DNA from: Octopus bimaculoides | Taxonomy: Eukaryota | Length of the DNA: 33,211 nucleotides | NCBI RefSeq assembly: GCF_001194135.2 | Contig: NC_068985.1 | Location: 70,136,071-70,169,281, forward strand | Direction: 5' to 3' | Shown here: piece by piece, positions 14,785 through 18,630 of the stretch | How positions within the stretch are numbered: position 1 is the stretch's first letter | How the letters are laid out: each line of letters starts with the position of its first letter | The notes under the pieces: generated by a model | What the model saw: only the letters and a program-made list of their open reading frames with translations | Database searches by the model: none | Told to the model about the DNA's origin: nothing | Position numbers and translations under genes: made by a program

Positions 14785-15632
14785 TATTGATGTTAATGAT
14801 AAAAAGCCAACAATGGCTTAAAAGGTCTAGACTAAAAGCAAAAACGGAAGGACTGATTCTCGCTACACAAAATCAAATGTTTGCCGACAAAAAACACAAA
14901 AAAAAACTATTACTCATTTAGTCTTTAACTTGTTTCAATCATTTGACTGCGGCCATGCTGGAGGACCGCCTTTAGTCGAGCAAATCGACCCCAGGACTTA
15001 TGCATTGTAAGCCTAGTACTTATTCTATCGGTCTCTTTTGCCGAACCGCTAAGTTACGGAGACGTAAGCACATCACCATCAGTTGTCAAGCGATGTTTGG
15101 GGGACAACCCACAGACACACAGACATATACACATACATACATACATACATATATATATAGTAGAAGACATTTGCCCAAAATACCACGCAGTGGGAATGAA
15201 TCCGGAACCATGTGATTGGTAAGAAAGCTACTTACCACACAGCCACTCATGCGCCTGTTAATAACAAAATAATGAAAACCGACACGAAATGCAGGATTTG
15301 CAACCGGGACATTGTTTCAGTTGACCACGTCTCTGATGGTCCGGTCCAAGCCAAATCTGAATATACATACAAACATGACCGAGTAAGTAATGATATCCAC
15401 AGGAAAATATACGAACCCTACAACACAAAATGTAACATGAAATGGTTAAACATAAACGTCGAGACGACACTTGTCTGGGATATGCTTACTCATTGCACAC
15501 GTCTTAGACAAAGCAGTTTCAATACAATTTTTAAAAAGACAGCACCAAAACAAACCAAAGCACATACGCAAGGCACACAGAGCTTCACTTGGTAGTGCAG
15601 TGACAGCACGTGATTAAATCAATAGTACTGAT
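14785..15632 (+). mobile_element. Old, degenerate R4/Dong-clade 3' fragment interrupted by a SINE
   Basis: 14805-14890 translates SQQWLKRSRLKAKTEGLILATQNQ (cf. THQWLRSSGLQAESEGFILAAQDQ in the 21.5-25.2 kb element). After the SINE, 15257-15493 translates NNKIMKTDTKCRIC...DH...AKSEYTYKHDRV..IH..I...Y...KW...WDM..H (cf. KCRFC...HH...GYKARHERV..LH..I...Y...KW...RDF..H). Ends at (TAA)n. Confidence 0.75.
14907..15256 (-). mobile_element. Family-2 SINE
   Basis: Reverse complement begins aggcgcatgagtggctgtgtggtaagtagctttcttaccaatcacatggttccggattcattcccactgcgtgg; tail cttgtttcaatcatttgactgcggccatgctggag...tagtcgagcaaatcgaccccagg. Confidence 0.88.
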
Positions 15633-15720
15633 TAATAATAATAATAATAATAATAATAATAATAATAATAATAATAATAATAATAATAATAATAATAATA
15701 ATAATAATAATAATAATAAA
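15633..15720 (+). repeat. (TAA)n microsatellite
   Basis: Directly visible. Confidence 0.97.
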
Positions 15721-17130
15721 AAAAGAGTTAGAACCAGCGGAGAGCTACAAATACCTAGGGGTAATTGAAGGGGACAATATCAAGCACTCAGTGATGAGGG
15801 AAAGGATCAGAAGAGAATGTTATCGCAGGGTGAGAGCAATACTGAAGNNNNNNNNNNNNNNNNNNNNNNNNNNNNNNNNNNNNNNNNNNNNNNNNNNNNN
15901 NNNNNNNNNNNNNNNNNNNNNNNNNNNNNNNNNNNNNNNNNNNNNNNNNNNNNNNNNNNNNNNNNNNNNNNNNNNNNNNNNNNNNNNNNNNNNNNNNNNN
16001 NNNNNNNNNNNNNNNNNNNNNNNNNNNNNNNNNNNNNNNNNNNNNNNNNNNNNNNNNNNNNNNNNNNNNNNNNNNNNNNNNNNNNNNNNNNNNNNNNNNN
16101 NNNNNNNNNNNNNNNNNNNNNNNNNNNNNNNNNNNNNNNNNNNNNNNNNNNNNNNNNNNNNNNNNNNNNNNNNNNNNNNNNNNNNNNNNNNNNNNNNNNN
16201 NNNNNNNNNNNNNNNNNNNNNNNNNNNNNNNNNNNNNNNNNNNNNNNNNNNNNNNNNNNNNNNNNNNNNNNNNNNNNNNNNNNNNNNNNNNNNNNNNNNN
16301 NNNNNNNNNNNNNNNNNNNNNNNNNNNNNNNNNNNNNNNNNNNNNNNNNNNNNNNNNNNNNNNNNNNNNNNNNNNNNNNNNNNNNNNNNNNNNNNNNNNN
16401 NNNNNNNNNNNNNNNNNNNNNNNNNNNNNNNNNNNNNNNNNNNNNNNNNNNNNNNNNNNNNNNNNNNNNNNNNNNNNNNNNNNNNNNNNNNNNNNNNNNN
16501 NNNNNNNNNNNNNNNNNNNNNNNNNNNNNNNNNNNNNNNNNNNNNNNNNNNNNNNNNNNNNNNNNNNNNNNNNNNNNNNNNNNNNNNNNNNNNNNNNNNN
16601 NNNNNNNNNNNNNNNNNNNNNNNNNNNNNNNNNNNNNNNNNNNNNNNNNNNNNNNNNNNNNNNNNNNNNNNNNNNNNNNNNNNNNNNNNNNNNNNNNNNN
16701 NNNNNNNNNNNNNNNACCAAAAACTGAGCAAATATAAAGATCTTGAAATAGAAATTAGCAAAATGTGGAATCTGAAGACGAAAACAATACCTATTGTCAT
16801 AGGTGCCCTGGGAATGACAGCGAAACGGGCTGATTACTACCTAGATCAGATTCCAGGAAACCCCAAAATGGCTGAAGTTCAAAAGATAGTGCTCATGGGA
16901 ACTGCCCATATCCTACGTAAAATACTGTCTATGTGATCTCAAATTTTAAAGCAAACTCATAATTTTCTTATGGTTTCTTAAACCTTCACCGAAACAAAAC
17001 TGTACAAATCCAAATATATGGTACCCTAGGCATAACACCTACATGAACTTCTAACTTGTTGTCTCTTGAGGTCTCTGGGTGAGACTTGGATCCAACTTGA
17101 ACAAATGCAAAACAAAAGTCAAACATAAAA
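15721..17130 (+). mobile_element. 5'-truncated R4/Dong-clade retrotransposon (subfamily A), middle hidden by N-gap 15848-16715
   Basis: 15722-15847 KELEPAESYKYLGVIEGDNIKHSVMRERIRRECYRRVRAILK (late RT/thumb). After the gap QKLSKYKDLEIEISKMWNLKTKTIPIVIGALG...AEVQKIVLMGTAHILRKILSM* (RLE C-terminus, stop 16936). ~190-bp 3' UTR, then (TAA)n. Confidence 0.9.
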
Positions 17131-17210
17131 TAATAATAATAATAATAATAATAATAATAATAATAATAATAATAATAATAATAATAATAATAATAATAAT
17201 AATAATAGTA

Positions 17211-17741
17211 GTAAACGCCCTTATGCAGTACCAGACAGTGGCACTCATGGCTTCTGATCTTAAATGACTGGAAATGTTATCATGAACTACAGTAAATATT
17301 CTGCTGAATACCAATGATTTGCTTTTCAGTTGTTTGACCTTAACCATTTGAGCATGTCCTTTAGTGGCTGACGATATGTGCATCTCTGATCACGAGCAGA
17401 TGTAGTGGGGGAGCATTAAAGTCATGTGTTGAGAAGAATTATTTGCAGTTTGGATAATTCACCGCTGGAAACGTGGGTGTTTCATTCAACATCCGTAAAC
17501 AAACCTTATTCAGGGACCTTTTGAGCGGGACGGGCTACTCGACTTGAAAATAATTCCAGCTGGGCCCCATCTACAAGGTCATGCGCTGTTTATCTTGATA
17601 TGAGATCACCATATCGCGTATATACGGTTGTGATGCATGTGCCTGGTGTACCCTTATCAGACGGGTTGTCATGTTGGGTATAATGGGCTTCGTATATTTT
17701 ACCCCAGTGTCACTTTGATGGCATGCACTGCTCCCTCACTC
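17211..17741 (+). mobile_element. Unassigned ~530-bp non-coding segment bounded by (TAA)n on both sides; probable 3' UTR of another non-LTR element
   Basis: Moderate-GC non-repetitive block running directly into (AAT)n at 17742; no ORF homology seen; orientation inferred from the tail only. Confidence 0.5.
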
Positions 17742-17847
17742 AATAATAATAATAATAATAATAATAATAATAATAATAATAGTAATAATAATAATAATAA
17801 TAATAATAATAATAATAATAATAATAATAATAATAATAATAATAATA

Positions 17848-18225
17848 AAAGAATTTGACAAGATCAGTAAATATAAATATAAAGACTTGCTAATAGAAAT
17901 TGAAAAAATGTGACACCTCAAGGCGACTACCATACCAGTGATTGTAGGATCTCTAGGAATGATAAAAAAAAAGGTACTGAAATCTATTTGAAAATGATAC
18001 CAGGCTTACCATCTCTACACGAGGTGCAAAAAATCATGTACTAAGAAGAGCATTATCGCTGTGAAAACAACATCCATTCATGATTTTTTTTTTCTTAAAT
18101 ACATGTTTTACCTATGAATTTGCGTGTGTAAATTGGGAATGCATACAACGTTTCTCTGCCCTAGGTGTACGGAAAACACTCGGCGAGAAATGGGGAAAAA
18201 ATTGAAGAAAGAAGAAAAAAAAACA
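17848..18225 (+). mobile_element. Severely 5'-truncated copy of the same Dong subfamily (B) as the 21.5-25.2 kb element
   Basis: Collinear with 24864-25241: aaagaatttgacaagatcagtaaa...cacctcaaggcgactacc...aaaatgataccaggcttaccatc...cattatcgctgtgaaaacaacatccattcatga...ttgaagaaagaa..aaacataataat. Confidence 0.92.
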
Positions 18226-18311
18226 TAATAATAATAATAATAATAATAGTTATAATAATAGTAATAATAATAATGATAATACTAATAATAGTAATAATAA
18301 TAATAATCATA

Positions 18312-18537
18312 ATGTTCTTTCCTTTTGCGTCCTGTATTTTATTTGTTTACTTTTCTATTCTTTTCCTTTTTTCTTTCAGTCTTCCCCCATTTCCTATATC
18401 ACATGACTCTATAAATGAACAATCTGGTGTGTTTGTTTAAATAGCCAACCAATGCATACAGTATGTTTCTCTGTTCTACCTGTCAGGAAGACACTCGGCA
18501 AGAAATGGAAACAATTGAAACAAGATGCTAATGAAAA
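18312..18537 (+). mobile_element. 3'-UTR-only tip of a third Dong-related subfamily (C)
   Basis: 18451-18525 aatgcatacagtatgtttctctg...acactcggcaagaaatggaaacaattgaaacaaga aligns with 18139-18212 aatgcatacaacgtttctctg...acactcggcgagaaatggggaaaaaattgaagaaaga; followed by (TAA)n(TGA)n. Confidence 0.7.
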
Positions 18538-18630
18538 TAATAATAATAATAATCATAATAATAATGATGATGATGATGATGATGATGATGATGATGATGG
18601 TTATTAATAATAATTATTATTATTATTATT

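Follow-up and report, generated by a model that had tools for sequence, protein, structure and literature searches.

A TAA-coupled train of Dong-like retrotransposon fragments in Octopus bimaculoides, probably built by repeated insertion into one microsatellite

We analysed a 33,211-nucleotide stretch of the Octopus bimaculoides genome (NC_068985.1, positions 70,136,071 to 70,169,281 of the forward strand; hereafter the window), in which a 3.8-kb segment consists of dead, 5'-truncated copies of a Dong-like retrotransposon lacking long terminal repeats (non-LTR), arranged head-to-tail with TAA repeats between them. In this train, five (TAA)n tracts lie between one 530-bp non-coding block and four same-strand pieces of an element with a reverse transcriptase (RT) and a restriction-like endonuclease (RLE). 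TAA tracts and other trinucleotide repeats were called by TRF. The tblastn query for the window was a near-full-length relative of 1196 residues with TAA on both flanks, located at 6679-10746 of L001, one of the comparison loci (L numbers), which are 20-kb stretches around relatives of the C-terminal peptide in long-read ENA assemblies of other species. The tracts, the pieces and their common orientation had been described in an initial annotation made from the sequence alone, and TRF, tblastn and blastn agree with that layout. The train reads as follows, where ORF stands for open reading frame, UTR for untranslated region, HMM for hidden Markov model and SINE for short interspersed nuclear element:

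14814-14909, + strand: old Dong-like fragment, part 1, the linker before the CCHC finger, WLKRSRLKAKTEGLILATQNQ (tblastn, residues 969-992, 54% identity)
14910-15246, no strand: SINE-like element with internal (ACAT)n, inside the old fragment (blastn copies elsewhere in the window)
15247-15632, + strand: old fragment, part 2, with CCHC finger, RHD motif and start of the RLE (tblastn, translation)
15633-15719, + strand: (TAA)29 (TRF, 100% pure)
15720-15847, + strand: Dong-A left flank, with a 5'-truncated start inside the RT, KELEPAESYKYLG... (tblastn 15743-15844, 62% identity)
15848-16715, no strand: assembly gap of 868 N inside Dong-A (sequence)
16716-17124, + strand: Dong-A right flank, ORF end and 3'UTR (translation, HMM, motif)
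17125-17207, + strand: (TAA)28, the Dong-A tail (TRF)
17208-17741, no strand: 530-bp non-coding block, belonging to a dispersed repeat of O. bimaculoides (peptide match, no Dong homology)
17742-17848, + strand: (TAA)35.7 (TRF)
17848-18224, + strand: Dong-B, 3'UTR preceded by the final ~75 codons, in which there are stops and frameshifts (tblastn 17848-18038, blastn)
18225-18313, + strand: degenerate (TAA)~30 (TRF, 83% matches)
18314-18389, no strand: T-rich stretch of 76 bp (no alignment to any Dong piece)
18390-18537, + strand: Dong-C, 3'UTR tip only (local alignment to 18091-18233)
18536-18631, + strand: (TAA)10 at 18536-18565, (TGA)12 at 18564-18599 and a TAA3/TTA6 palindrome at 18601-18631 (TRF, sequence), the downstream end of the train's repeat tract

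All Dong-like pieces of the train share the TAA polarity (tblastn, alignment). Furthermore, a + strand TAA tract abuts every Dong 3' end in the window, namely those of Dong-A, Dong-B, Dong-C and a long copy that the initial annotation had missed, and out of seven TAA/TTA tracts in the window, six are in contact with a Dong piece. This association between TAA and Dong in the window is not a matter of chance. The long copy lies ~3 kb downstream of the train, on the same strand:

~21500-25240, + strand: near-full-length, frameshifted Dong-like copy, outside the train (tblastn, RVT_1)
25241-25331, + strand: (TAA)30, the tail of the long copy (TRF, sequence)

Its tblastn match (21570-25055) spans residues 18-1189 of the reference. 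All that we observed on its 5' side was a degenerate A/T-rich remnant containing aataataata, and before this came a compound (TAC)26/(TGC)n at 21185-21400.

The long copy is also the piece that best defines the element. It matches RVT_1 (E=7.4e-20), and its best PDB relatives are R2 retrotransposon proteins (E=2.5e-18). The RT is followed by a CCHC finger, CRFCNDAIENIHHRISGC, and then by RHERV ... KPDIIIKD ... LLIDMSIP ... KEFDK, the same motifs being present in L001; the CCHC and PD-D-K (RLE) calls were made by motif inspection alone, no Pfam model having scored there. Judged by these matches and motifs, the long copy is an RLE-type non-LTR element of the R2 superfamily, and 1531 relatives were found in public assemblies. 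In the window and at the other loci, the elements sit in (TAA)n with a single polarity and are bordered by TAA at either junction, which corresponds to the Dong-type target. Protein homology searches returned no named relatives, and the placement in the Dong/R4 clade that we favour rests on the TAA target and on the published RepeatMasker-type Dong-R4 annotation in octopus. HERO, which includes microsatellite-specific families (PMC4640811), is a possible alternative clade. By contrast, we rejected the R2 clade on the basis of the target, as the flanks are not the 28S site but TAA repeats and transposon pieces, with no rRNA match by Rfam in the window. Rfam also gave no match to a ribozyme of the hepatitis delta virus (HDV) type or to any other family of relevance, whether in the whole window at the gathering threshold or at E up to 10 in three 5' ends (window 21380-21680, L002 6540-6840 and L001 12400-12700), sequence models being poor at capturing such ribozymes; the train pieces themselves all lack 5' ends.

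The left flank of Dong-A ends in the last RT motif, YKYLG (...ESYKYLGVIEGDNIKH..., 15743-15844), and the right flank opens in the last 72 ORF codons (QKLSKYKDLEIEISKMW..., 16718-16933), which contain no internal stop and are closed by a stop codon at 16934-16936. The C-terminal peptide is 94% identical to O. bimaculoides A0A0L8GZ77 and 79-94% identical to many short O. bimaculoides gene models, and the right flank scores 129.6 with an HMM of 73 C-terminal sequences. The two flanks of the gap are colinear and on the same strand, but the spacing between the YKYLG and QKLSKY codons is 975 nt in Dong-A, compared with 1107 nt in the long copy of the window and 1125 nt in L001, so that they stand ~130-150 nt too close. 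They would fit one Dong-A element if the true gap were ~1000-1020 nt, a continuity that is unproven. The frame shared across the gap (975 = 3 x 325) is meaningless, since the number of N is an estimate. The Dong-A 3'UTR holds a GGTCTC..GAGAC hairpin motif. More generally, a 3'UTR motif (T)GAGGTCTC..GGT..AGACTTGG, or a GAGATC...GATCTC hairpin, recurs 40-90 nt before the TAA tail, at 17040-17080 in the window (Dong-A), at 10700-10730 in L001, and upstream of the TAA tails in L009, L012, L014 and L018; it may represent an RNA element recognised by the RT.

Dong-B is 79.5% identical to the long copy (24865-25239) over 370 nt, while Dong-C and the Dong-B 3'UTR share a 75-bp core of 79% identity within ~150 bp that align at lower identity. 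Dong-B, Dong-C and the long copy belong to one 3'UTR family, Dong-A has a different 3'UTR, and decay has gone too far in the old piece for it to be assigned. Because of this common family, the pieces represent about three lineages (the old fragment, Dong-A, and Dong-B with Dong-C and the long copy) and not the "at least four subfamilies" of the initial annotation. Likewise, only part of the Dong-C proposed there (18312-18537) could be retained, since 18390-18537 is Dong 3'UTR and 18314-18389 matches nothing. The conserved 3' end of Dong-B, Dong-C and the long copy is unlike that of Dong-A and reads CCTAGGTGTACGG...CACTCGGC.AGAAATGG. We also considered Dong-B as the 3' half of the old fragment and rejected it, as Dong-B is ~80% identical to the long copy at the nucleotide level and the old fragment has no nucleotide match to that copy.

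The old fragment, first described as a single piece at 14785-15632, proved to be Dong-like, although it is split by the SINE-like insert and truncated at its 3' end. Its tblastn matches lie at 14814-14885 and 15278-15502 on the + strand, the latter with 29-35% identity, and homology ends at about residue 1087 of 1196, leaving 130 nt before (TAA)29. Part 2 is decayed, stops ~70-110 residues short of the ORF end and has no 3'UTR; the C-terminal coding part, the 3'UTR and the fragment's own tail have all been lost. Since the fragment lacks its own 3' end, the first tract, (TAA)29, is not its tail. Insertion at an internal A/T-rich site combined with downstream loss, or a deletion mediated by the tract, are both possible origins of this end, and none of the explanations we tried accounts cleanly for the junction between the old fragment and the first tract. 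Losses next to a tract are found elsewhere, as a Dong copy in L002 is without its 3' tip and tail and a copy in L001 is without its ~190-nt 5'UTR. With respect to the SINE-like insert, blastn found further copies in the window at 11045-11555 (opposite strand, 78-80%) and at 26636-26886 (66%). This repeat carries an internal (ACAT)/(TG) microsatellite, and ARAGORN detected no tRNA-like part in it. Two tandem 217-bp units that are 84% identical and of SINE-type appearance lie at 28308-28738 (TRF).

The 530-bp block is of a different nature. Its minus strand (17571-17672) encodes a 33-residue peptide that matches, at 91% identity, the N-termini of P0194 and P0195, a pair of O. bimaculoides gene models with no other relationship, and because this peptide recurs in both, the block is a copy of a dispersed repeat and not unique DNA. 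We found in it no reading frame, no tRNA-like head (ARAGORN) and no second copy in the window. We rejected two Dong origins for the block, as the degraded 3' end of a Dong copy or as the 3' part that the old fragment has lost, for want of any Dong signal: the sole match in a sensitive tblastn search was 34 amino acids long (E=0.84) and not colinear, and the 73-sequence C-terminal HMM was silent. Its repeat nature fits "an insertion", and nothing ties it to the Dong machinery. The earlier count of five insertions, each leaving TAA, is overstated, as the old fragment has no 3' end and the block, although a dispersed repeat, is without Dong signal. P0194 and P0195 both open with the block peptide and continue with unrelated sequence, which is LINE RT-like in one of them (LINE, long interspersed nuclear element); they are probably annotation artefacts with the repeat as first exon.

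At the 5' junctions, the start of Dong-A corresponds to GTAATAAAGGAACTTGAG in the long copy, so that repeat and element have TAATAAA in common, whereas Dong-B shares only AA(A) with the repeat (junction alignment). In a sequence this rich in A, the junctions would agree, if weakly, with microhomology joining of an incomplete cDNA to the upstream repeat.

The comparison loci share only Dong matches with the window (65-80%, blastn), and their hosts are not close relatives of octopus. Among them, solitary copies carry TAA on both sides. In L012 and L013, 7 TAA units precede the element and 79 and 66 units, respectively, follow it; in L009 and L011 the numbers are 19 versus 9 units at the 5' side and 10 versus 8 units at the 3' side. 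The tracts that flank an insert are thus hypervariable in length between samples, and in full-length copies a ~190-nt 5'UTR directly follows the TAA tract. The initial annotation had named a TAA present only as a 3' tail as an observation that would count against it; this is not the case, as L009 and L012 have TAA on both flanks.

Trains coupled by TAA are frequent in the long-read contigs. In L001, a full copy, a 5'-truncated element of a second lineage, 160 bp of other sequence and an element of a third lineage follow one another, with TAA before, between and after them, and L014 has a train of two elements. The first 20,300 positions of L018 (ERZ25066847) hold at least seven Dong-like pieces of several lineages, placed head-to-tail over 20 kb with TAA tracts of 13-36 units; this train is broken once by a LINE of the apurinic/apyrimidinic endonuclease (APE) type on the other strand. 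L019 (ERZ25066843) has many short 3' fragments between TAA tracts, as well as a long (GATAAT)n variant tract. For the window and 8 independent loci, chosen for containing Dong, 17 of 21 complete 3' ends have a (TAA) tract of at least 5 units within 700 nt downstream, compared with 10% of random positions. In the same set, a Dong end is touched by 31 of the 39 TAA tracts, and the chains run on the + strand in 27 cases versus 3 on the - strand. TAA was found at 12 of 30 5' ends, which is a lower bound, as protein homology often begins well inside the element.

At the downstream border of one train, a filled and an empty site can be compared. In L001, positions 12406-17188 consist of (TAA)13, a 4.7-kb Dong-like element and (TAA)11, whereas L016 (12421-12480) and L017 (12417-12482) have an uninterrupted (TAA)~20 at this place. 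The flanks of L016 and L017 are 95-98% identical to those of L001, and the sequences may be alleles, paralogues or come from sister taxa. This site is direct evidence that a TAA tract beside an earlier insert is reused as a target. Together with the solitary copies, it contradicts the idea that TAA is a mere tail of elements that insert unspecifically. The copy upstream in L001 is the one that lacks the ~190-nt 5'UTR, which L016 keeps.

Considering all the above results, we think it probable that the octopus locus is a TAA microsatellite that has been hit repeatedly by TAA-specific Dong-like non-LTR retrotransposons. This reading builds on the observed anatomy of the locus, the orientation rule, the RT and RLE nature of the element, the same architecture in other species and one filled/empty site; the biochemical steps, the order of the insertions and the correct joining of the assembled locus are what we infer in addition. 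The RLE would nick the TTA strand of the TAA duplex in a polarity-specific manner, as suggested by R2 and Dong biochemistry, and the element RNA would pair with the TTA strand through its (UAA)n 3' end, reverse transcription being primed at this place; the orientation would thereby be fixed. Incomplete cDNAs would be the rule and would be joined to the upstream TAA repeat, sometimes at a TAA-like microhomology. Since each insertion turns one tract into two of the same polarity, the tract next to an old insert would become a target again, and re-expansion by slippage followed by renewed hits would yield a head-to-tail train. At this locus there would have been at least three events of different age, involving Dong-A, the older fragments Dong-B and Dong-C, and a very old copy that later received the SINE and was deprived of its 3' end. 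A dispersed repeat of 530 bp, unrelated to these, would also have come to lie between two of the tracts. That the events were sequential is indicated by the unlike decay of the pieces, the old fragment having been hit by a SINE and carrying many stops, Dong-A having its C-terminal frame still open, and Dong-B showing both stops and frameshifts. The mechanism of the initial annotation, one locus reused because insertions leave new TAA targets, is thus well supported by the trains and by the filled/empty site in long-read contigs.

Several points weigh against this reading. The window comes from a gapped short-read assembly, and its four long tracts of 83-107 bp are nearly pure and close to the limit that short reads can span, which makes their lengths and joins insecure. 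Dong-A is interrupted by a gap. The old fragment has no canonical 3' end, so that the first junction needs an extra event (a deletion or an internal insertion), and the block has no recognisable Dong 3' end, its arrival between two TAA tracts being unexplained. Moreover, it is in other species, and not in O. bimaculoides, that we found the empty site and the trains that lend support. The main rival is an assembly artefact, in which contigs would have been misjoined or wrongly gap-closed through pure TAA tracts and Dong 3' fragments concatenated. All copies have TAA on either side and the same polarity, so that a misjoin of any kind would take on the look of a same-strand train; there are six N gaps in the window, the length misfit of the Dong-A gap would be in line with such errors, and the longest pure microsatellites in the window reach ~135 bp, suggesting a read-length ceiling. 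However, no TAA tract contains a gap, each tract lying inside a contig, and the architectures seen in long-read contigs of other species make the assembled train biologically plausible. We consider a misjoined locus unlikely.

It is less probable still that neighbouring pieces (Dong-B with Dong-C, or the block with Dong-B) were deposited together as a chimera, in a single round of target-primed reverse transcription during which the RT left one Dong RNA part-way and continued on the (UAA)n tail of a second RNA. The R2 enzyme is known to make such end-to-end template jumps in vitro, the pieces are 5'-truncated and joined directly to TAA with a short A-rich or TAATAAA microhomology, and Dong-B and Dong-C are members of one 3'UTR family that have diverged to a similar degree, with identities of ~79% between the two and with the long copy. 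On the other hand, the tracts between pieces have 28-36 units, far beyond what a jump requires, the old fragment, Dong-A and Dong-B differ clearly in decay, and the filled/empty site of L001 and L016 shows that sequential insertion does occur. Finally, unequal or ectopic exchange between TAA tracts of different Dong copies may have combined fragments and removed the 3' portion of the old copy, in keeping with an old fragment that abuts TAA without a 3' end and with the tract-adjacent deletions in L002 and L001. Recombination alone would leave the different 5' truncation points unexplained and would need many pre-existing fragments with suitable ends; as the origin of the whole train it is very improbable, although it may have contributed to one junction.

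The surroundings of the train are rich in other repeats. Long trinucleotide tracts are numerous in the window (11747-11816, 13669-13706, 13807-13885, 18564-18599, 20279-20382 and 21185-21278), some tracts switch unit abruptly, as in (TTA)11(GTA)13, (TAA)n(TGA)12 and (TAC)26 followed by (TGC)n, and an (AGA)35 tract adjoins an assembly gap. Such tracts may derive from TAA by mutation, or may be targets or tails belonging to other elements. Between two gaps, the minus strand at 19134-19931 carries the 3' part, rich in G+C, of another kind of LINE (..LKLLGVWFDPDLQLEKNW.., CPRCAQDDETVLHALVQCP..), with an ORF end at 19163. A gap and a low-complexity stretch (18632-18968) separate this LINE from the (TTA)6 at 18614-18631.

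Repeated insertion of a Dong-like element into TAA agrees with what is known of the family. TAA is the target of Dong in Bombyx mori, DongAg in Anopheles and DongBg in the snail Biomphalaria glabrata (PMC3812793), and in Bombyx Dong an HDV-like ribozyme at the 5' end frees the RNA from a co-transcript with TAA (PMC3774820). The elements described here resemble these members of the R4 clade in having a single-ORF RT, a C-terminal CCHC finger and RLE, a (TAA)n of fixed polarity and TAA at both junctions (PMC3812793, PMC3774820). They differ from Bombyx Dong in that the train pieces are all 5'-truncated and the 5' ends scanned had no Rfam HDV-like ribozyme. They share their host genus with the LINE/Dong-R4 families annotated in O. 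bimaculoides and O. vulgaris. The O. bimaculoides repeat library is reported to contain a full-length Dong consensus (PMC9115989), and O. vulgaris has 5 recently active Dong-R4 families with 1129 recent insertions (PMC13282606); Dong-R4 further belongs to an ancient coleoid repeat set (PMC8967140). TAA targeting in a mollusc, which the initial annotation had inferred for this locus, is therefore not new, since DongBg and abundant octopus Dong-R4 were already published. A term search of PMC9115989 and PMC13282606 found no discussion of TAA targeting or trains. In the literature searched, we found no description of a TAA-coupled train from a cephalopod.

Arrays at repeated targets, made up of same-strand copies that are mostly 5'-truncated, are known from R1 and R2 in rDNA and from TRAS/SART and HeT-A/TART at telomeres. 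Utopia is associated with U2 gene arrays (PMC4640811). The octopus train resembles all of these in that orientation-fixed, repeated insertion gives a same-strand array; it differs in that each insertion renews its own target, by splitting the tract and bringing in the element's tail, where the others rely on a host gene array or a chromosome end. Waldo, Mino, Kibi, Koshi, Togen and some HERO elements also have a simple-repeat target on both sides and regenerate their site (PMC3812793, PMC4640811), but these elements use other repeat units, and most of them are APE-type and not RLE-type. A TAA-coupled train is therefore the expected outcome of known Dong behaviour, real but ordinary.

A more far-reaching proposal is that Dong-like elements are the main source of TAA microsatellites in these genomes, and that trains grow into repeat domains capturing unrelated sequence. 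Repeat-primed reverse transcription would then add or extend TAA units, and each insertion would double the number of tracts. The 31 of 39 tracts at Dong ends and the 3' tracts of up to 79 units speak for it, albeit at loci pre-selected for Dong, and we regard it as rather doubtful. In this context, the 530-bp block could be one such captured sequence, carried along non-autonomously by the Dong machinery.

Our findings leave the knowledge of Dong unchanged, as its target, its mollusc host range and its abundance in octopus had already been published. They are relevant to repeat annotation, to the design of microsatellite markers and to the judging of short-read assemblies. Altogether, the locus illustrates how a microsatellite-specific retrotransposon can regenerate its own target and pile up in one orientation, and it suggests that a sizeable share of the (TAA)n tracts of cephalopods may be Dong junctions.

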